A stretch of 35,820 nucleotides of DNA, from assembly GCA_036785375.1 (NCBI GenBank), contig JAWMAR010000061.1, positions 7,220,181-7,256,000 on the forward strand, written 5' to 3'. The stretch's first letter is position 1, and the number at the start of each line of letters is the position of its first letter. The DNA is from Leucoraja ocellata (Eukaryota). The notes below the pieces were generated by a model, which was not told where the DNA came from, searched no databases, and saw only the letters and a program-made list of their open reading frames with translations. The position numbers and the translations under genes are program-made. Shown here piece after piece: positions 12,515 through 33,852 of this stretch.

Positions 12515-12658
12515 TAAGGAGGGCATCGAAATAGTCGTGGGAATTCGAAGACGTACTTGTAGGAGTTCGTAGATTACCACGTTCTTGATTTTTTTTAGGT
12601 CCTTTAAACTAGGCAGAGGTTTTGAATTAATTGTGAGAGAGGGAACCTGAGGGGCAAC

Positions 12659-12866
12659 TGGGGTAGTGATGAAGATGTGGGGCCTCGTGGACAGCGAGCA
12701 TCTCCTGCGGGTGTGGGGACCCAACACAGACAGTGGAGCACATAGTCACCAGTTGCCCCAAACACCGGTTGGCCACCCAATGGTGAACGAGGTCTGATTG
12801 GCCTGGACGTTGGTCTGGCTCGCCTCAACGGAGCTGCAGGTCTAAAAGACACACGCCAGAAGAAGA
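12659..12866 (+). mobile_element. 5'-truncated I-group (Ingi/Vingi-like) LINE 3' end
   Basis: 9-bp TSD AGGGGCAAC (12650-58, 12867-75). Frameshifted ORF end MKMWGLVDS../CGCGDPTQTVEHIVTSCPKHR (CxCx8Hx4C)/..GLIGLD../WLASTELQV* (stop 12843-45), very short 3' UTR and (AGA)n tail. Inserted into a CR1-type fragment. Confidence 0.7.
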
Positions 12867-13026
12867 AGGGGCAACCTTTCTTGTGCTAAGGGTGGTGGGC
12901 ATTTGGAATGAACTGCAGGAGGGGGCAGTTGTGGCAGGAACTATCACAATGATTAAAAAAAACATTGGGGCCAGAACATGGATCGGAAAGCTTTAGATAG
13001 GTACTAGAAGGGCTAAATGCAGGCAG

Positions 13027-13467
13027 GTGGGACTAGTGTAGATGGGACATGTTGGTCGGGGTGGGACTAGTGTAGATGGGGCAAGTTGGACGGGGTGGGA
13101 CTAGTGTAGATGGGGCATGTTGGTCTGGGTGGGACTAGTGTAGATGGGGCATGTTGGTCGGGGTGGGACTAGTGTAGATGGGGCATGTTGGTCGGGGTGG
13201 GACTAGTGTAGATGGGGCATGTTGGTCTGGGTGGGACTAGTGTAGATGGGGCATGTTGGTCGGGGTGGGACTAGTGTAGATGGGGCATGTTGGTCGGGGT
13301 GGGACTAGTGTAGACGGGGCATGTTGGTCGGGGTGGGACTAGTGTAGATGGGGCATGTTGGTCGGGGTGGGACTAGTGTAGATGGGGCATGTTGGCCGGG
13401 GTGGGACTAGTGTAGATGGGGCATGTTGGTCGGGGTGGGACTAGTGTAGACGGGGCATGTTGGTCGG
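13027..13467 (-). repeat. Same 34-bp minisatellite in opposite orientation, ~13 copies
   Basis: GTGGGACTAGTGTAGATGGGGCATGTTGGTCGGG units. Confidence 0.95.
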
Positions 13468-13795
13468 CATGTGCCTTACAGTTCTCCCTGTGACTGCTGG
13501 GTTTTATCCGGGTGCTCCGGTTTCCTCCCACATCCCAAAGACCTGTAGGCTAAGTGGCCCCTAGTGTACAGGGAGTGGTTGAGAAACTGGAATACCACAG
13601 AACTAGCATCAATGGATTTGGCGGGCCGAAGGGCCTGTTTCCAAGCTGATCTTTCAATCCATCAATTTGCCGTGATGTCTCGTCCGCAAGGCACATTAAA
13701 GACCAGCAGTGTAATTGGTGTAAAAGTCATTAATTTCCCCCAATATGCAAGCGGGCGTGAGTGTACAATGCTTGCAAGGAACGAGCTGGTGAGAC

Positions 13796-13850
13796 GGGGT
13801 GGGGAGATTGCAACCTTCACGTGGCCCGCCCTGTTTCGACGAATGCAATC
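13796..13850 (+). ncRNA. Minimal HDV-like self-cleaving ribozyme (predicted)
   Basis: P1 GGGGTGG(13796-802)/CCGCCCT(13826-832) with a G1.U wobble; P2 GATTGCA(13806-812)/TGCAATC(13844-850); P3 ACC/GGC (one mismatch); L3 TTCACGT; a G after P1 for P1.1; a very short TTTCGA linker in place of P4; J4/2 CGAA with putative catalytic C13840. Confidence 0.8.
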
Positions 13851-13936
13851 AACCTGGCGTGCACAATCAAATAAGATCAAATAGAACAAGTTGTCCTGCA
13901 ACTTTAGGCTGTGCCCGCCACATGCAAGAAGAAGAC
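13796..13936 (+). mobile_element. Short non-autonomous retroelement with 5' HDV-like ribozyme and (GAA)n tail, copy 1
   Basis: Perfect 11-bp TSD GCTGGTGAGAC (13785-13795 and 13937-13947), an AAGAAGAAGA tail, and a homologous second copy at 16965. Confidence 0.85.
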
Positions 13937-14189
13937 GCTGGTGAGACCAGGAAAGCTACCTTGTGATGAAGTCTTAGCGAGACTTTATCATCCCCTGGCT
14001 CTGTGAAAGGAAATGAAACATTTGCCAGAATTCTTCCCTCTCTATATCATCGTTCCTCAATTGCGATGTGAATAACAGAGTCTGTATCCAAGGCTGTGAC
14101 CCCACCCATCAGTCTCCGCCAACTGACCTACTTTACATTCCGACTCGGAAGAGCAGCTTTAAAACTTGCATTCTAGGTTCAAATCTTCT

Positions 14190-16316: not shown

Positions 16317-16964
16317 GAAGTTGTTTCTTTGCTCTGCCTTTGATACTTCAGTTTGAAGGAATCGGATGGAAGGAAGGACAAGGAATTAGTGAGACTGCCT
16401 CACCTTTACACCTGCACCTACTGCTGACTAATTGAACCTTGCGGGCAGTATCGCAGTGAGTCATGCCCCATACATCCCACAAAGCTTTGCCCACCAGCTG
16501 ACATCTGTGTGTTATATTGCTCTTAACTCCCTCTAAACGGTGATTATCTGTGTGTGCCTTGTGCTTAAATACATTTGCACTTTGTCAGGAGTGTCGAGAG
16601 AAAAAATACAGCGCAGTATTTGGATAGTGTCATTGGAAACATGAGCCACCACAATGCACACACATAACCTATGCCAAGAGCCAAGAGCTTCTTCAGATCC
16701 GATATCGAGGGGCAATCAAAACTCTTTTATCACAAATATTCAGTTTCCCGCCTTTTGATTTTCAAGTCTTTGGAAGGTTGATTGCTCCGGGTTTAGGGTG
16801 TAGATAGAGTGGATGCTTCCACTTGTGGGAGAGTCTAGGACTCAGAATCGATGTGTCGAAAGGAACTGCAGATGCTGGTTTACACTGAAGAGTAATTCTT
16901 CAGAGTCTGCAGAAGTGTCTCGACCTGAAAGGTCACCTATTCCTTCTATCCAGTGATGCTGCCT

Positions 16965-17099
16965 GGGGTGGGGAGATTGCAAACTTCATGTGGGACGCCC
17001 TGTTTCGACTAATGCAATCAACTGGACGTGCACAAACGGAAGATCAAATAGAACAAGTTGTCCTACAACTTTAGGCTGTGCACGCCACATGCAAGAAGA
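16965..17099 (+). mobile_element. Same HDV-ribozyme retroelement, copy 2 (ribozyme 16965-17019, P3 degenerate)
   Basis: Colinear with copy 1, with the same 5' start, intact P2 and J4/2 CTAA. Imperfect TSD AGTGATGCTGCCT/AGTGATGCTCTCT (16952-16964, 17100-17112). It interrupts a Penelope-terminus remnant. Confidence 0.8.
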
Positions 17100-18190
17100 A
17101 GTGATGCTCTCTGATCCGCTGAGTTACTCCAGTATTTTGTGTTGAGCCTCAGAATTTCGTTTAGTTTTTTGCCCAATAGAAATTTGGAACAGACTTGTTG
17201 GTCTGAAGGATTTTCTCTCAGTTCTATGTTTCTATATCCTTTCATTGGTGTATATTCACCCAAGAATAAAGGGCATTCAGGTGTCGTCATTTAGCTCTTA
17301 GGGCTAATGGAATCGAGGGATATGGGGGAAAAAGCAGGAACGGGGTACTGATTTTGGATGATCAGCCATGATCACATTGAATGGCGGTGCTGGCTCGAAG
17401 GGCTGAATGGCCTCCTCCTGCACCTATTGTCTATGTTTCTATGCCACAAGCTTTATTGGAGAGTCTGTTTAGAGACACAGCAGTGAAACAGGCCATTTGG
17501 CCCATCAAGTCCATGCTGGCCACTGACCACTAGTGACCACACCAGTTTTAGGTCATCCCATTTCCTCATCCATTCTCTCCACAGTCGCGCTGACTACGGG
17601 TGCTGTCTGTGCGGAGTTTGCACGTTTGTCTGTGTGCTTCCTCCCACATTCACAAAGATGTGCGGGTTTGTAGGTTAATTGGCATCTGTGGATTGTCCCT
17701 AGTTTGTAGGATAGAACTAGTGTGTGAGTGATTGCCCCTCAATGCAGACATGGTGGGCCGAAGGGCCTGTTTCAATGCTGTATCTATAAACTGCAGGCTT
17801 GGTTACTCTCTCTCCATTCTTTTCTCCCCAACGTGACCCATCTACCAATCAACCCCCCCTCCTCACCTGGATCTACCTATCATAGGGTCTTACAGTGTGG
17901 AAACAGGCCCTTTGGCCCAACCTGCCATAGACACAAAATGCTGGAGTAAGTCAACGGGACAGGCAGCAACAGTCAAGGGATATGGTGAGAAGGCAGGAAT
18001 GGGGTACTGATTCTAGATGATCTGCCATGATCACAGTGAATGATGGTGCTGCCTCGATGGGCTGAATGGCCTACTCTTACACCTATTATCTATTGTCTAT
18101 TGCATCTCTGGAGAGGAGGAATGGGTGAAGTTTTGGGTCTAGTCCCTTCTTCACTTGCTAGCAATCCATCATTTTTCTCATTTCTGCATT

Positions 18191-19472: not shown

Positions 19473-19693
19473 GGGATTTTTAAATGGCACAATGGGCTAA
19501 GTGTTCGGCTGGCGACCGGAAGGTAGCCGGTTCGAATCCCGCTTGGAGTGCATACTGTCATTGTGCCCTTGGGGCAAGACACTTCACCCACCTTTGCCTG
19601 TGTGTAATGTAATGTAATTATGTGAAGCACTTTGGGGTCAATGCAAGTTGACTGAAAATGTGCTATATAAATAAGATTATTATTATTATTATT
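19473..19693 (+). mobile_element. tRNA-derived SINE with CORE/Mermaid-like centre and L2-type tail
   Basis: A box tggcacaatgg, B box ggttcgaatcc, gtgcccttggggcaagacacttcaccc, and tail tgtgaagcactttg..gtgctatataaat(ATT)n. Confidence 0.75.
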
Positions 19694-26175: not shown

Positions 26176-26612
26176 GGGGCCACGGTGTTGCAGTGGTAGA
26201 GTTGCTGCCTTATGCCCCTGTCCCACTTAGGAAACCTCCATGGAAACCTCTGGAGACTTTGCGCCCCACCCAAGGTTTCCGTGTGGTTCCCGGAGGTTGC
26301 CGGAGGTTGCAGGCAGTGGAAGCAGGTAGGGAGACCGACAAAAACCTCCGGGAACCGCACGGGAACCTTGGGTGGGGTGCAAAGTCTCCAGAGGTTTCCG
26401 TTCAGGTTTCCTAAGTGGGACAGGGGCATTGCAGTGCGTGCAGCGCCGGAGATCCGGGTTCAATCCCAACTACGGGTGCTGTCTGTACGGAGTTTGTACG
26501 TTCTCCCCGTGACCTGCACAGGGTTTCTCCGAGATCTTCGGTTTCCTCCCACACTCCAAAGACGTGCAAGTTTGTAAGTTAATTGGCTTGGTGTACGTGT
26601 AAATTGTCCCGA
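26176..26612 (+). mobile_element. HE1-like V-SINE split by a MITE
   Basis: The tRNA head is interrupted at gttgctgcctta|; the B box and V-domain follow the insert. Confidence 0.85.
26213..26428. mobile_element. Almost fully palindromic Harbinger-like MITE
   Basis: ~85-bp imperfect arms starting tgcccctgtcccacttaggaaacc; flanks TTA/TTG. Confidence 0.85.
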
Positions 26613-28797: not shown

Positions 28798-29287
28798 TAA
28801 AGTTGTCCCTCTCTTGGTGCTGGGATGACCTTCGGACGAGAGAAAATATTTTGTGCTTGCACGAGGTTTGATTCACACCCTGGTGCTCTCGGTTCGACAC
28901 TTTGCAATTTGTAGGCTGGTGCTGCTCCCAGATTTGCCAGCCAACCTGCTGTAACAAATGGTGGCTATCGCCAGCGCTGGCAGATCATTACCCGAGTAAC
29001 AGACACAACTGTAACAGCACCGGGATTATCTGCATCATCTCCACACTGTTACTCACCGCTCCATGTCCGACCTCTTATCTTGCTGCAGATGAGTAACGTT
29101 AATGCGTTATTGACTGAGTAGGGAGCGACGGGCTTGTTGGCAGATGGGACACGGGCCGGGGAGCGTTGCAAAGATTGTCGCAGTGGTTGGATGAGGCTAT
29201 CCATTAAGTTAACGCTGGCGGTGAATGTAATAACACGCTGGTGCAGCGGTAGTGTTGCTGCCTTACAGTGTGTATAGACAGCACCCA

Positions 29288-29572
29288 GAGTTACTCCAGC
29301 ACTCTGTGAAACGTCACCTATCCATGTTCTCCACAGATGCTGCCTGACCCACTGAGTTACTCCAGCACTCTGTGAAACGTCACCTATCCATGTTCTCCAC
29401 AGATGCTGCCTGACCCGCTGAGTTACTCCAACACTCTGTGAAACGTCACCTATCCAGGTTCTCCACAGATGCTGCCTGACCCGCTGAGTTACTCCAGCAC
29501 TCTGTGAAACGTCACCTATCCATGTTCTCCACAGATGCTGCCTGACCCGCTGAGTTACTCCAGCACTCTGTG
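29288..29572 (+). repeat. 66-bp tandem repeat (~4.3 copies) derived from the Penelope terminus
   Basis: Units start at 29288, 29354, 29420, 29486 and 29552. Confidence 0.95.
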
Positions 29573-30411
29573 TCATTTTACAAAATAAACTAAACGCTGA
29601 CCAAAACTAAAATGTCCAGCGACGTTGGTGCTGTTGTCAAACATGGCTTTTGACTCATTCGCAAAGAATTGCACGCAGCTAGACTTAATTTCCGCACCTT
29701 TTGCCAAACGCTTCAGAAACTAAAATCCTTGGCAAATGTTCCGTCCTCAGAAGCTGCCCGAACTCATGAATCTTTAATGTTAATCCCCAGTTTTTATTTC
29801 AAATCCCATGCGCTTTGCAGTTAAGCAGGAACTTGGAGCCCAGAGGGGAAGCTATCTAATGATTGCACGATACTGTATGGAGTAATCCCACACAAACTGG
29901 GACTCTAACTTAACTTAATCATGGAGTGTGAGCCTGTTTTATTCATCGTATTAATTATACAGTGAAGCCTTATGGAACCATCATCATCAATGAGGAATAT
30001 TAGAATAACTCAAAAGTCTTGCAGATATCTGGAATAAATCAGCAGCTTCATTGCATTTTACCGGGCTGCATCACAGCATGGTTTGGGATGTGGGAGGAAT
30101 CTGGAGCTCCTGAAAGAAACGGGGAGAACATGCAAACTCCGTACAGACAGTATAGAATCTGTATAGAGTTTTGTTCTCCCTGTCTCCACGTGTAAAAGTT
30201 TCATGTATTCAAGAGAGATAGCTAACGGAATCGAGAGATATGGGGAGAAAGCAGGAACGGGGTACTGATTGTGGATGATCAGCCATGATCATATTGAATG
30301 GGGGTTCTGGCTCGAAGGGCCGAATGGCCTCTACTCCTGCACCTATTTTCTATGTTTCTGTTTTGTGCTGCTGGCTTCCTTCACTGATGAATTCTCTTTC
30401 AATGCTTGCAG

Positions 30412-30762
30412 GAGCTCTGGACATCCAGGTTCCAATGGACCCAGTGATTGCCCGCTATGGGGAAGACGTGACACTGAACTGCACGTTCACCATCGAGGGC
30501 AACTTCTCCCTGGGGGATGTGAGTGTGATCTGGCAGCTGACAGAGACCAAGGCCATGGTGCACAGCTACTCGCAGCAGTGGAACGTGCAGAGCGACCAGG
30601 CGGACAGCTTTGTCAACCGGACCGCACTGTTCATGGACCAGCTGGGCAAGGGCAACGCCTCGCTGCTGTTGAGGAATGTGAAGATTGAAGATGAAGGCAG
30701 CTTCACCTGCTTTGTCCGTGTCCTAGACTACAACAGTGCCCCCATCATGCTCCAACTCGCAG
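30412..30762 (+). CDS. cd276: CD276/B7-H3 IgV-domain exon (351 nt, phase 1-1)
   Basis: Acceptor ttgcag| at 30411 and donor G|GTACAA at 30763. The translation GALDIQVPMDPVIARYGEDVTLNC..IWQLTETK.MVHS..NRTALFMDQLGKGNASLLL..EDEGSFTCFV aligns closely with B7-H3 as recalled (GALEVQVPEDPVVA..IWQLTDTKQLVHS..NRTALFPDLLAQGNASLRL..DEGSFTCFV). Confidence 0.95.
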
Positions 30763-30873
30763 GTACAACACTATCCTAAACATACTTCCAAATGTGACGT
30801 GGAACATAGAACGCTACAGCACAAAGATACAGGAAAGATATTGTCAATCTTCAAAGGGTTCAGTAAAGATTTA

Positions 30874-32460: not shown

Positions 32461-32742
32461 TTCTTATTTATTAATTCATCCTAGATTAACCCAAAGCTGC
32501 AGCTTCTTATTAGACAAAGAAACATAGACAATAGGAGCAGGAGTAGGCCATTCGGCCCTTTGAGCCAGCACCGCCATTCAATAAGATCATGGCTGATCAT
32601 CCAGAATCAGTACCGTGTTCCTGCTTTCTTCCCATATCCATTGATTCCATTAGCCCCAGGAGCTAAGTCTAACTCTCTGTTGATGGGGCACAAGTCCTCA
32701 GATGTGGGTCCACCATGCTGATGCCCCTACCTCTTCTTGCAG

Positions 32743-33039
32743 CCTCTTACTCCAAGCCCAACCTGCACCTGGAGCCCAGCAAGAACCTGAAGCCTGGAGA
32801 TGAGGTGAGCATTGCCTGCCATTCCTCGGGGGGCTACCCGCAGGCAACGGTGCTGTGGTTTGACGGGAAGGGGGGCAACGTGACGGAGAATGTCAGCACC
32901 TCGCAGGTAGCCAATGAGCGAGGCCTGTTCGAGGTGAGCAGCGTGATGCGAGTCACCCTGGAGCCCAACAGCTCGTACAGCTGCACGGTGAGGAACGAGC
33001 TACTGGGAGAGGAGACCCATGCTGCAGCGACAATCACAG
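32743..33039 (+). CDS. cd276: CD276/B7-H3 IgC-domain exon (297 nt, phase 1-1)
   Basis: Acceptor ctcttcttgcag| at 32742 and donor ACAG|GTCAGT at 33040. The translation ASYSKPNLHLEPSKNLKPGDEVSIAC..GYPQATVLWFDG..NVSTSQVANERGLFEV..YSCTVRN..ATITG matches B7-H3 IgC as recalled ([36 protein letters not shown]). Confidence 0.95.
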
Positions 33040-33117
33040 GTCAGTCCCACCTCACCGCCACGCCCAACACCCTCCTCTCCTCTCCTCTACCCACCAATGC
33101 TAACATGCACATCCCAC

Positions 33118-33852
33118 ACGGTATGGAACAAGCTGCCAGAGCATGTAGTTGAGGCTGGGACTATCCCAACGTTTAAGAATGGTCCCTGTGGCTAAAGGGA
33201 TCAGGGGGTATGGAGAGAAGGCAGGGTTGGGATACTGAGTTGGATGATCAGCCATGATCATATTGAATGATATTGTACTCGCTATAATTTAGAAGATTGA
33301 GGGGGGATCTTATAGAAACTTACAAAATTCTTAAGGGGTTGGACAGGCTAGATGCAGGAAGATTGTTCCTGATGTTGGGGAAGTCCAGAACAAGGGGTCA
33401 CACAGTTTAAGGATAAGAGGGAAATCTTTTAGGACTGAGATGAGAAAAACATTTTTCACACAGAGAGTGGTGAATCTGTGGAATTCTCTGCCACAGAGGG
33501 CGGTTGAGGCCACACAGTTCATTGGCTATATTTAAGAAGGAGTTAGATGTGGCCCTTGTGGCTAAAGGGATCAGGGGGTATGGAGAGAAGGCAGGGTTGG
33601 GATACTGAGTTGGATGATCAGCCATGATCATATCGAATGGCGGTGCAGGCTCGAAGGGCCGAATGGCCTCTACTCCTGCACCTATTTTCTATGTTTCTAT
33701 GTAAGAAACAGTTAGACAGGTACATGGATAGGACAGGTTTGGAGGGATATGGACCAAACGCAGGCAGGTGGGACTAGTGTAGCTGGAACATGTTGGCCGG
33801 TGTGGACAAGATGGGCCAAAGGGCCTGTTTCCACACTGTATCACTCTAAGAC
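33118..33852 (+). mobile_element. Nested CR1 3' ends (33180-33701 inserted into an older copy, TSD TAAGAA)
   Basis: TAAGAA at 33174-79 and 33702-07; the host sequence resumes after the insert. Confidence 0.8.

Follow-up and report, generated by a model that had tools for sequence, protein, structure and literature searches.

A short, abundant retroposon headed by a predicted HDV-like ribozyme in a vertebrate genome

A retroposon of about 140 nt, present in very many copies in the genome examined here and in its relatives, begins exactly with what is probably a stripped-down version of the self-cutting RNA known from hepatitis delta virus and the mammalian CPEB3 gene. The element was found in a stretch of 35,820 nt from Leucoraja ocellata (GCA_036785375.1, contig JAWMAR010000061.1), which is referred to below as the window. 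It has no ORF and lies between perfect 11-bp target-site duplications. The most likely interpretation, to which a probability of roughly 0.7 can be given, is that a P4-less HDV-like ribozyme of the CPEB3 type heads a non-autonomous non-LTR retroposon, although cleavage itself is inferred. The preliminary description, made from the sequence alone, had proposed a promoter-independent, non-autonomous family that releases its 5' end from host read-through transcripts and is retroposed in trans. Everything that could be computed agrees with this proposal, while self-cleavage, promoter independence and mobilisation in trans remain inferences. The coordinates of the features are collected in the table.

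Features of the retroposon and its surroundings in the window (positions of the window; pairs checked base by base)
Position	Strand	Feature	Details
12659-12866	+	5'-truncated LINE copy, 208 bp	ORF2 C-terminal zinc knuckle, very short 3' UTR, (GAA)3 tail; 9-bp duplications at 12650-12658 and 12867-12875
13785-13795	+	Left target-site duplication	gctggtgagac
13796-13936	+	Retroposon copy 1	141 nt, no ORF
13796-13802	+	P1 5' strand	GGGGTGG; 7 of 7 pairs with 13826-13832, wobbles G13796.T13832 and T13800.G13828, -11.3 kcal/mol; G13796 is the predicted first base after the cleavage site
13803-13805	+	J1/2	GGA
13806-13812	+	P2 5' strand	GATTGCA; 7 of 7 Watson-Crick pairs with 13844-13850, -7.4 kcal/mol
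13813-13815	+	P3 5' strand	ACC; 2 of 3 pairs with 13823-13825 (A13813.C13825 does not pair)
13816-13822	+	L3	TTCACGT; T13816 and G13821 at the reverse-wobble positions, C13818 is the P1.1 partner
13823-13825	+	P3 3' strand	GGC
13826-13832	+	P1 3' strand	CCGCCCT
13833-13834	+	P1.1 3' strand	G13833 pairs with C13818; T13834 faces T13817
13834-13839	+	Stretch in place of P4	TTTCGA; first base also faces T13817 in P1.1; at most a one-pair stub closing TTCG
13840-13843	+	J4/2	CGAA; C13840 is the candidate catalytic cytosine
13844-13850	+	P2 3' strand	TGCAATC
13851-13925	+	3' body	Predicted long stem 13856-13864 with 13911-13919 and inner hairpin 13888-13904; probable recognition module for the partner's reverse transcriptase (inferred)
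13926-13936	+	Tail	(AAG)3 then AC
13937-13947	+	Right target-site duplication	gctggtgagac
16965-17101	+	Retroposon copy 2	Decayed head; imperfect 13-nt duplication at 16952-16964 and 17100-17112 (11 of 13 alike); end ambiguous by 2 nt
19477-19551		tRNA	The only tRNA called by ARAGORN in the window

A blastn search with word size 7 found only two copies in the window. The second copy is 89.2% identical to the first over 139 nt, and the two are alike only from GGGGTGGGG to CAAGAAGAAG. It interrupts a SINE that 4 of 4 aligned paralogues keep intact. In copy 2, the first G could equally belong to the duplication, and its fold is decayed: the top P1 pair is broken, P3 is lost, and J4/2 is CTAA. A scan of metagenome contigs with a 32-letter pattern gave 0 hits.

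Contigs from sequencing runs of four organisms (X1, X3, X11 and X17, coded organisms A, B, D and E) show a huge family with sharp ends. In total, 7,655, 13,979, 13,471 and 767 contigs, respectively, were aligned to the region. The summed depth is about 4–20 outside the element and 10^5–10^6 inside it; in X1, it is 4–8 in the flanks and 2.0–3.9 x 10^5 in the bins from 13809 to 13922, and the other runs show the same step. In organisms A and B, the single-copy flank contigs run into the element from the left duplication. Loose contig ends before 13802 end in GGGGT and those before 13805 end in GGGGTGGA (148+85, 235+118, 263+183 and 25+13 contigs in the four runs). The letters upstream are AT-rich and unconserved (agreement 0.43–0.60), and no conserved upstream head of the Pol III type is seen in the best-supported loose-end classes. 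From the consensus of the loose ends, it can be inferred that most copies carry a J1/2 of 2 nt (GA or AA). At the other end, loose ends behind 13935 read AGAAGAAG and then AT-rich, unconserved letters in 267, 340 and 435 contigs of X1, X3 and X11, so the tail is (AAG)n of variable length in the family.

It could be supposed that the element is an ordinary Pol III SINE whose head derives from an unrecognised small RNA, with an accidental HDV-like pairing. Its size, its abundance and its mostly full-length copies resemble a SINE, and there is no run of four T inside it. However, ARAGORN calls no tRNA at the element, and no tRNA, 5S, 7SL or snRNA match appears in Rfam at E<=10. The descriptor hit at exactly the first base and the repair of P3 in the family majority, both described below, also speak against this explanation, which is very unlikely.

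The first 54–55 nt of the element pair in the order P1, P2, P3, L3, P3', P1', P1.1, J4/2 and P2' that characterises the nested double pseudoknot of HDV-like ribozymes (PMC4908430), and the family's 5' end coincides with the G of the G1-Y pair at which cleavage is predicted. The single P3 mismatch is private to this copy, which may be impaired. At 13825, T replaces C in 98.6, 97.4, 95.9 and 98.4% of depth in X1, X3, X11 and X17, which turns P3 into a perfect ACC/GGT helix in the family majority. The fixed L3 letters of a published descriptor (U at the first position, C-G at the fifth and sixth; PMC6326823) are present, and J4/2 fits its C-R-R-A form. Nevertheless, P1.1 has one G-C pair, against two in the descriptor, and P4 is missing. 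Natural P4-less HDV-like ribozymes are reported (cited in PMC6326823), so P4 is peripheral rather than defining.

Whether such a fold could arise by pure chance, from a G-rich 5' end and a palindrome-rich head, was examined with shuffled sequences. A first, loose descriptor gave 9 hits in the window against a mean of 9.6 in 40 shuffles. When very many repeat ends are read, rare coincidences will also turn up. A second descriptor was taken from PMC6326823 (G1-Y, L3 U..CG, P1.1 C-G, J4/2 C-R-R-A) and relaxed to one P1.1 pair, at least 2 of 3 pairs in P3, and no P4. It gave 1 hit in the window, at 13796 on the + strand, against 1 hit in total in 300 dinucleotide shuffles of 69,446 positions each, or about 5 x 10^-8 per position. 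It should be noted that this descriptor was assembled after the candidate had been seen. With the hit lying at the first base on the sense strand, with P3 perfect in the family majority and with core letters identical to those of CPEB3, chance is a most improbable explanation.

Other computational tests did not support the ribozyme. No HDV, CPEB3 or other ribozyme family of Rfam matched, either at gathering score over the window (0 matches) or at E<=10 on 301 nt (1 match, an unrelated snoRNA at E 5.9) or on 67 nt (0 matches); these models cannot encode the pseudoknots and include P4. The searches are uninformative for a P4-less pseudoknot but still count as a failed test of membership. Nested folding, by which a pseudoknot cannot be scored, gave -14.3 kcal/mol for the head, no better than shuffles (z +1.09, with 181 of 200 shuffles folding at least as well), and the energy of the whole element was likewise no better than shuffles (z 0.13). 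On per-position letters rather than linked haplotypes, no covariation was seen. The helices do not vary among copies or among the four organisms, so no pair has independent comparative support; the only helix variants, 13827 C>T (3–5%) and 13828 G>A (13–25%), keep pairing through one-sided changes at a CpG. The density of variable sites is about the same in the head (5 of 54) as in the body (7 of 86).

The position of the variation in the head is nevertheless consistent with a ribozyme. It sits where HDV-like ribozymes tolerate it, namely in the length and letters of J1/2 and at the second J4/2 position, and no variant of 5% or more is seen in P2, the P3 5' strand, L3 or P1.1. C13840 is changed to T in only 2.9–5.4% of depth, whereas 13841 carries G>T in 15.5–44.3% (a CTAA subfamily) and G>A in 6–11%. 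In the stretch that replaces P4, 13838 G>A reaches 7–11%. In the body, family variants at 13894, 13897 and 13898 fall in or next to the predicted hairpin loop. The CTAA form breaks C-R-R-A, and either that position is free or cleavage is not needed for spread.

This last point bears on another explanation, in which the head is a real, selected RNA or DNA module but not a working ribozyme. It would fold, or act as an internal Pol II promoter, to recruit the partner's protein or to define the 5' end by transcription start, and its HDV-like shape would be a relic of a ribozyme that lost activity along with P4. The missing P4, the single G-C pair of P1.1 and the abundant CTAA subfamily favour this view. 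In L1Tc, the same 77 nt act as promoter and ribozyme (PMC3383444). In X17, which is guessed to be RNA although none of the 24 runs is on record as such, 25+13 contigs join upstream flank to the element and would be uncleaved forms if it is RNA. On the other hand, the letters needed only for catalysis (G1.U, the L3 U and CG, and the J4/2 C) are all kept and are among the least varied positions, and natural P4-less ribozymes are reported to be active (Riccitelli 2014, as cited in PMC6326823). An inactive head is possible but unlikely.

The family can be best explained as a retroposon with two modules: the minimal predicted ribozyme, and the remaining ~85 nt that form a structured 3' body ending in (AAG)n. 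In the proposed cycle, a copy lying in sense orientation in any Pol II transcript (here probably in or upstream of an intron of a CD276 gene) is transcribed by read-through. The ribozyme cuts immediately 5' of G+1 and so creates the exact 5' end of the element. A LINE-encoded endonuclease/reverse transcriptase then recognises the 3' body and tail, nicks an AT-rich target, and copies the RNA to its cleaved 5' end, which regenerates a complete ribozyme and 9–14-bp target-site duplications. Cleavage, read-through transcription and the partner are inferred in this scheme.

No autonomous LINE with this head was found. In the window, the 5'-truncated LINE copy is a weak candidate for the kind of partner; it shares with the element only CACGCCA and the GAA/AAG tail. 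A search of 1.84 billion representatives with its 37-aa peptide gave 10 hits at E<=0.001, which were short C-terminal fragments or repeats and, in one case, an unrelated bacterial adhesin, and none allows the clade (Ingi/Vingi or other) to be named. The Rex3 tail is (GAA)2(GATG)n (PMC6274825) and is not the same tail.

If the head cleaves, this would be one of the most minimal retroposons known to us, made of one 54-nt ribozyme and one ~85-nt recognition tail, and a vertebrate case in which a ribozyme, not a promoter, defines a very abundant repeat. Tens of thousands of sense-oriented copies in introns would then be potential RNA cut sites, with effects on host transcripts, and a natural eukaryotic P4-less HDV-like ribozyme would be at hand for studies on structure and function. 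In the literature examined, HDV-like ribozymes in vertebrates are listed only for the mammalian CPEB3 locus and lamprey (PMC8256844). In the same literature, no paper on an HDV-like ribozyme in a SINE-like element of a cartilaginous fish or other vertebrate was found and a 19-letter string of the head is printed in none, although an existing entry in Repbase or Dfam cannot be excluded. Even without cleavage, this is a well-defined, very abundant repeat family that deserves a proper library entry.

The core letters are the same as those of the mammalian CPEB3 intronic ribozyme. For the latter, G1.U36, U20, U21, C22, A23, G25, U26, G37, U38 and C57-G58-A59-A60 are named, and P1.1 is described as one G-C plus a U-U pair (PMC4836649). 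The element has the same strand order and the same letters, with a 7-bp P1 and a 7-nt L3, and with a 2-nt J1/2 it has them at the same positions up to 38. However, the CPEB3 ribozyme is single-copy, conserved in one intron and not mobile, it has an 18-nt P4 hairpin, and its P2 and P3 letters differ; it is described as “highly conserved among mammals” (PMC8256844), from which its restriction to mammals is taken. The element, in contrast, is a dispersed repeat whose neighbouring gene here is CD276. The shared letters include not only the few required in all HDV-like ribozymes but also free ones (the second, fourth and last L3 letters, the U/U in P1.1, and the G in J4/2). It might be speculated that the CPEB3-type ribozyme is not a mammalian invention but the head of an old vertebrate retroposon lineage, still hugely amplified here, and that the CPEB3 intron holds a domesticated copy that later gained or kept a P4. 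This family would then be its first living mobile relative. Such an origin is an unlikely but not excluded possibility, and a cleaving head would make it directly testable by comparative genomics.

Of the following systems, the first three are precedents for the mechanism. The NARTc, RIME and SIDER elements of trypanosomatids, internally deleted L1Tc/ingi derivatives carrying the Pr77/L1TcRz ribozyme, are also short, ORF-less retroposons whose first tens of nucleotides are an HDV-like ribozyme cleaving at +1; they are released from long co-transcripts and mobilised by a LINE (PMC3185411, PMC4035085). Their ribozyme is 77–96 nt and has P4, the same DNA is also an internal promoter, the hosts are protists, the partners are known, and activity has been shown in vitro, whereas here it is inferred. 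The R2 SIDEs of Drosophila consist of the LINE's 5' ribozyme plus its 3' end, and the ribozyme generates the 5' end from a co-transcript (PMC3414825). They insert site-specifically into 28S rDNA, have a large ribozyme (~184 nt; PMC6765202) and have few copies, while the family here is dispersed in AT-rich sites and has on the order of 10^4–10^5 copies. The bipartite ORF-absent non-autonomous LINEs of vertebrates (RTE-derived RTESINE2, WALLSI3 and MAR4_MD; Vingi-1_EE derivatives) are made only of a LINE's 5' and 3' ends and are probably transcribed by Pol II, and a 5' ribozyme is proposed to explain why they keep the exact 5' end (PMC5786205). For those families, the ribozyme is only a suggestion in that paper; in the present element, the ribozyme motif is explicit, but the parental LINE was not found. 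The minimal HDV-like ribozymes of the human microbiome (Riccitelli, Delwart and Luptak 2014, as cited in PMC6326823) also lack the P4 stem but are microbial or metagenomic and are not described as retroposon heads. Finally, ribozyme-bearing SINE-like and Penelope-like elements with hammerhead or twister motifs (Schistosoma Sm-alpha, PLEs, Perere-3/SR3) likewise have a self-cleaving RNA built into a retroposon to process its transcript (PMC6765202, PMC8501958), but they carry a different ribozyme class and placement, and some have a Pol III promoter.

The preliminary description, which had placed a short retroposon between perfect 11-bp target-site duplications, is confirmed at the level of the letters. 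The identical 11-mer gctggtgagac stands on both sides of an element that starts with GGGGTGGGGAG and ends with CAAGAAGAAGAC. A second copy was identified with blastn, and no further copy was found in the window. When the two loci were aligned with their flanks, they were alike only from GGGGTGGGG to CAAGAAGAAG. The second copy sits inside a copy of a SINE that is common in the window, and four of four aligned paralogues run straight through the insertion point. After the insert, 13 letters of the SINE are repeated, with 11 of 13 alike. This is therefore a mobile insertion with target-site duplications of variable length and not a local duplication. The coordinates of the element, its predicted helices, and the neighboring features are collected in the table below.

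Positions of the retroposon copies, the predicted pairings of the head, and other features of the window
Feature	Position	Strand	Description
Left target-site duplication	13785-13795		11-mer gctggtgagac
Retroposon, first copy	13796-13936	+	141 nt
P1 (predicted)	13796-13802 with 13826-13832	+	7 of 7 pairs, including G13796.T13832 at the predicted cleavage site; duplex energy -11.3 kcal/mol
P2 (predicted)	13806-13812 with 13844-13850	+	7 of 7 Watson-Crick pairs; -7.4 kcal/mol
P3 (predicted)	13813-13815 with 13823-13825	+	2 of 3 pairs
P1.1 (predicted)	C13818-G13833	+
Right target-site duplication	13937-13947		11-mer gctggtgagac
Retroposon, second copy	16965-17101		89.2% identity over 139 nt; inserted in a SINE copy
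5'-truncated LINE copy	12659-12866		208 bp; ORF2 C-terminal zinc knuckle (frameshifted), 3' UTR of roughly 20 nt, (GAA)3 tail
9-bp duplications of the LINE copy	starting at 12650 and 12867		AGGGGCAAC; whole feature 12650-12875
Piece of another repeat family	13613-13656		GGGCCGAA...GGCC core; 10 copies in the window
34-bp tandem repeat arrays	7869-8780 and 12924-13578		inverted orientation; arms about 450 nt, 93% complementary, 4.4 kb apart
tRNA-Ala (GGC) called by ARAGORN	19477-19551	+	could be a gene or a SINE head
Tandem array, 66-bp period	29222-29617		built from the CTGAGTTACTCCAGCA part of the common SINE
Tandem repeat, 11-bp period	1801-2375		32 registers reported
G/T-rich low-complexity sequence	26230-26400	+	satisfies a loose HDV descriptor (P1 7 bp, P2 8 bp)
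ORFs with Ig V-set and Ig C-type domains	30285-30779 and 32715-33152	+	best solved relatives CD276 (B7-H3) chains

The extent of the family was examined by aligning contigs of four public runs with 13600-14150 at 80% likeness. The runs are designated X1, X3, X11, and X17 and come from the coded organisms A, B, D, and E, respectively; X17 is guessed to be RNA. In total, 7,655, 13,979, 13,471, and 767 contigs were aligned. In X1, the summed depth is 4-8 in the unique flanks and 2.0-3.9 x 10^5 in the bins from 13809 to 13922. It steps up in the bin 13790-13808 and down again in 13923-13941, and the other three runs show the same pattern. This depth is not a copy number. Nevertheless, the ratio, together with two copies in 34,723 non-N bases of the window, points to the order of 10^4-10^5 copies. 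The best-supported loose ends lie before 13802 and 13805, with 148 and 85 contigs in X1, 235 and 118 in X3, 263 and 183 in X11, and 25 and 13 in X17. Their consensus ends in GGGGT or GGGGTGGA, and the letters before that are AT-rich, with an agreement of only 0.43-0.60. The family therefore begins at GGGGT in all four organisms, and no conserved sequence lies upstream in these classes. Behind 13935, the loose ends (267, 340, and 435 contigs in X1, X3, and X11) read AGAAGAAG and then AT-rich, unconserved letters, so the tail is (AAG)n of variable length. The coverage of the 5' bins is 60-75% of that of the 3' bins, which indicates that most copies are full length. The short piece of another repeat family located upstream of the element also reaches a contig depth of 10^5-10^6 in all four runs, and in other loci a few contigs join its end to the start of the element 20-30 nt downstream. 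The right-flank contig starts matching only at 13959, with 45 letters unaligned. This may represent an empty or differently filled orthologous site.

The fold of the head was checked base by base. A first, loose descriptor was useless. It found 9 hits in the window against a mean of 9.6 in 40 shuffles. The G/T-rich sequence listed in the table satisfies such a descriptor but none of the core-letter constraints, and it is a reminder that helices alone are not evidence. The constraints of a published HDV descriptor were then used (PMC6326823), namely G1-Y, P1.1 C-G, L3 with U at the first and C-G at the fifth and sixth positions, and J4/2 C-R-R-A. They were relaxed to one P1.1 pair, at least 2 of 3 P3 pairs, P2 of 5 or more pairs, and 0-150 letters in place of P4. 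This search finds exactly one place in the window on either strand, at 13796 on the + strand. It finds one hit in all of 300 dinucleotide-preserving shuffles of 69,446 positions each. This corresponds to a rate of about 5 x 10^-8 per position, and here the position is the first base of a retroposon on its sense strand. The descriptor was written after the candidate had been seen, which weakens this figure somewhat but not by orders of magnitude.

The family adds further information on the fold. The only flaw in this copy, A13813 opposite C13825, is private. The family reads T at 13825 in 98.6, 97.4, 95.9, and 98.4% of depth in the four runs, which gives a perfect ACC/GGT P3. The loose-end consensus implies that most copies have one G fewer after GGGGT, so that J1/2 would be 2 nt (GA or AA) rather than the 3 nt of both copies in this window, although this is an inference from soft-clipped ends. 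Other positions of the head vary in 5% or more of depth in at least one run. The variants 13827 C>T (2.7-5.0%) and 13828 G>A (13-25%) both keep P1 paired, and 13838 G>A (7-11%) falls in the stretch that replaces P4. In J4/2, 13840 C>T amounts to 2.9-5.4%, whereas 13841 shows G>A in 6-11% and G>T in 15.5, 16.2, 37.2, and 44.3%. Nothing varies in either strand of P2, in P3 5', in L3, or at G13833. The large subfamily differences of the head thus fall in J1/2 and at the second J4/2 letter, while the candidate catalytic C and the L3 C-G stay near the floor, although they are CpG letters. This pattern is what selection on source copies for cleavage would give, but it is not proof. The density of variable sites is the same in the head (5 of 54) as in the body (7 of 86), one body CpG (13916-13917) is equally quiet, and no pair shows a two-sided change.

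The core of the head is also similar to that of the CPEB3 ribozyme. An NMR study of the CPEB3 ribozyme (PMC4836649) names a G1.U36 wobble, the L3 residues U20, U21, C22, A23, G25, and U26, the residues G37 and U38, and a 4-nt J4/2 of C57, G58, A59, and A60. The element has T T C A C G T in L3, G then T after P1', T facing T next to the C-G pair, and CGAA. With a 2-nt J1/2, every one of these letters also has the same number up to 38. However, the P2 and P3 letters differ, and the 18-nt P4 hairpin is replaced by six letters. Only six nucleotides are stated to be invariant among HDV-like ribozymes (PMC8256844). The extra identities are therefore more than the fold demands, though four or five free positions can also agree by chance or convergence.

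There is also evidence against this interpretation. Rfam does not recognize the head: there were 0 matches at gathering score in the window, only an unrelated snoRNA at E 5.9 in 301 nt, and nothing at E<=10 in 67 nt. The nested folding energy is ordinary. For the head, it is -14.3 kcal/mol, with 181 of 200 shuffles folding at least as well, and for the whole element z is 0.13. P4 is absent, although active P4-less natural ribozymes are cited in PMC6326823. The CTAA subfamily does not fit C-R-R-A, yet it is abundant. There is no RNA evidence, as all of the 24 runs are contigs and none is on record as RNA, and if X17 is RNA, it contains contigs that join the upstream flank to the element. The second copy has lost the top P1 pair and P3. 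A structured but inactive module, or a combined promoter and ribozyme as in L1Tc (PMC3383444), cannot be excluded in the absence of a cleavage assay. In contrast, a Pol III SINE head is not supported. The only tRNA called by ARAGORN in the window is far away, no tRNA, 5S, 7SL, or snRNA model matches at E<=10, and no conserved upstream head is seen in the loose-end classes with the best support.

The surroundings of the element were also characterized. The two ORFs with Ig domains have CD276 chains as their best solved relatives by far, at E 3 x 10^-71 and 2 x 10^-70, and an atlas look-up places the second in Chordata. The element lies 16 kb upstream on the same strand, possibly in a long first intron; the gene is confirmed here, but the intron is not. 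The element also lies about 220 bp beyond the second of the inverted arrays of the 34-bp tandem repeat. The truncated LINE copy lies between 9-bp duplications, and the 9-mer occurs twice in the window, while 7 of 100 shuffles give two or more matches. Relatives from a search of 1.84 billion proteins carry Pfam zf-RVT. This copy shows that a LINE with this kind of tail and duplication is active in the genome. However, its likeness to the 3' end of the element is only CACGCCA plus the tail, and it therefore does not identify the partner.

Taken as a whole, this is a two-module, ORF-less element with exact and shared 5' and 3' ends, AT-rich targets, duplications of 11-13 bp, and a head that fits a CPEB3-type HDV-like ribozyme starting at base 1. 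Its mechanism can be inferred from the known behavior of R2, L1Tc/NARTc, and RTE elements (PMC3414825, PMC3185411, PMC6765202, PMC5786205). It would include read-through transcription by host promoters, self-cleavage 5' of G+1, recognition of the 3' body and tail by a LINE reverse transcriptase, and target-primed reverse transcription up to the cleaved end, which restores a complete ribozyme in every new copy. The head is very probably a real ribozyme motif, and a probability of about 0.72 can be given to the full mechanism. A bolder and unproven implication is that the mammalian CPEB3 ribozyme descends from a retroposon head of this lineage.

In full-text literature searches, which did not cover Repbase, Dfam, or supplements, neither such an element in a vertebrate with a P4-less, CPEB3-type core nor this sequence in print was found. 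Ribozyme-headed non-autonomous retroposons as such are already known. Examples are NARTc, RIME, and SIDER, the R2 SIDEs, and the bipartite non-autonomous LINEs of RTE, Ingi, Vingi, and R2. For the last group, a 5' ribozyme has been proposed as the reason why they keep the 5' end of the LINE (PMC5786205). P4-less HDV-like ribozymes, in turn, are known from microbial sequence (PMC6326823).
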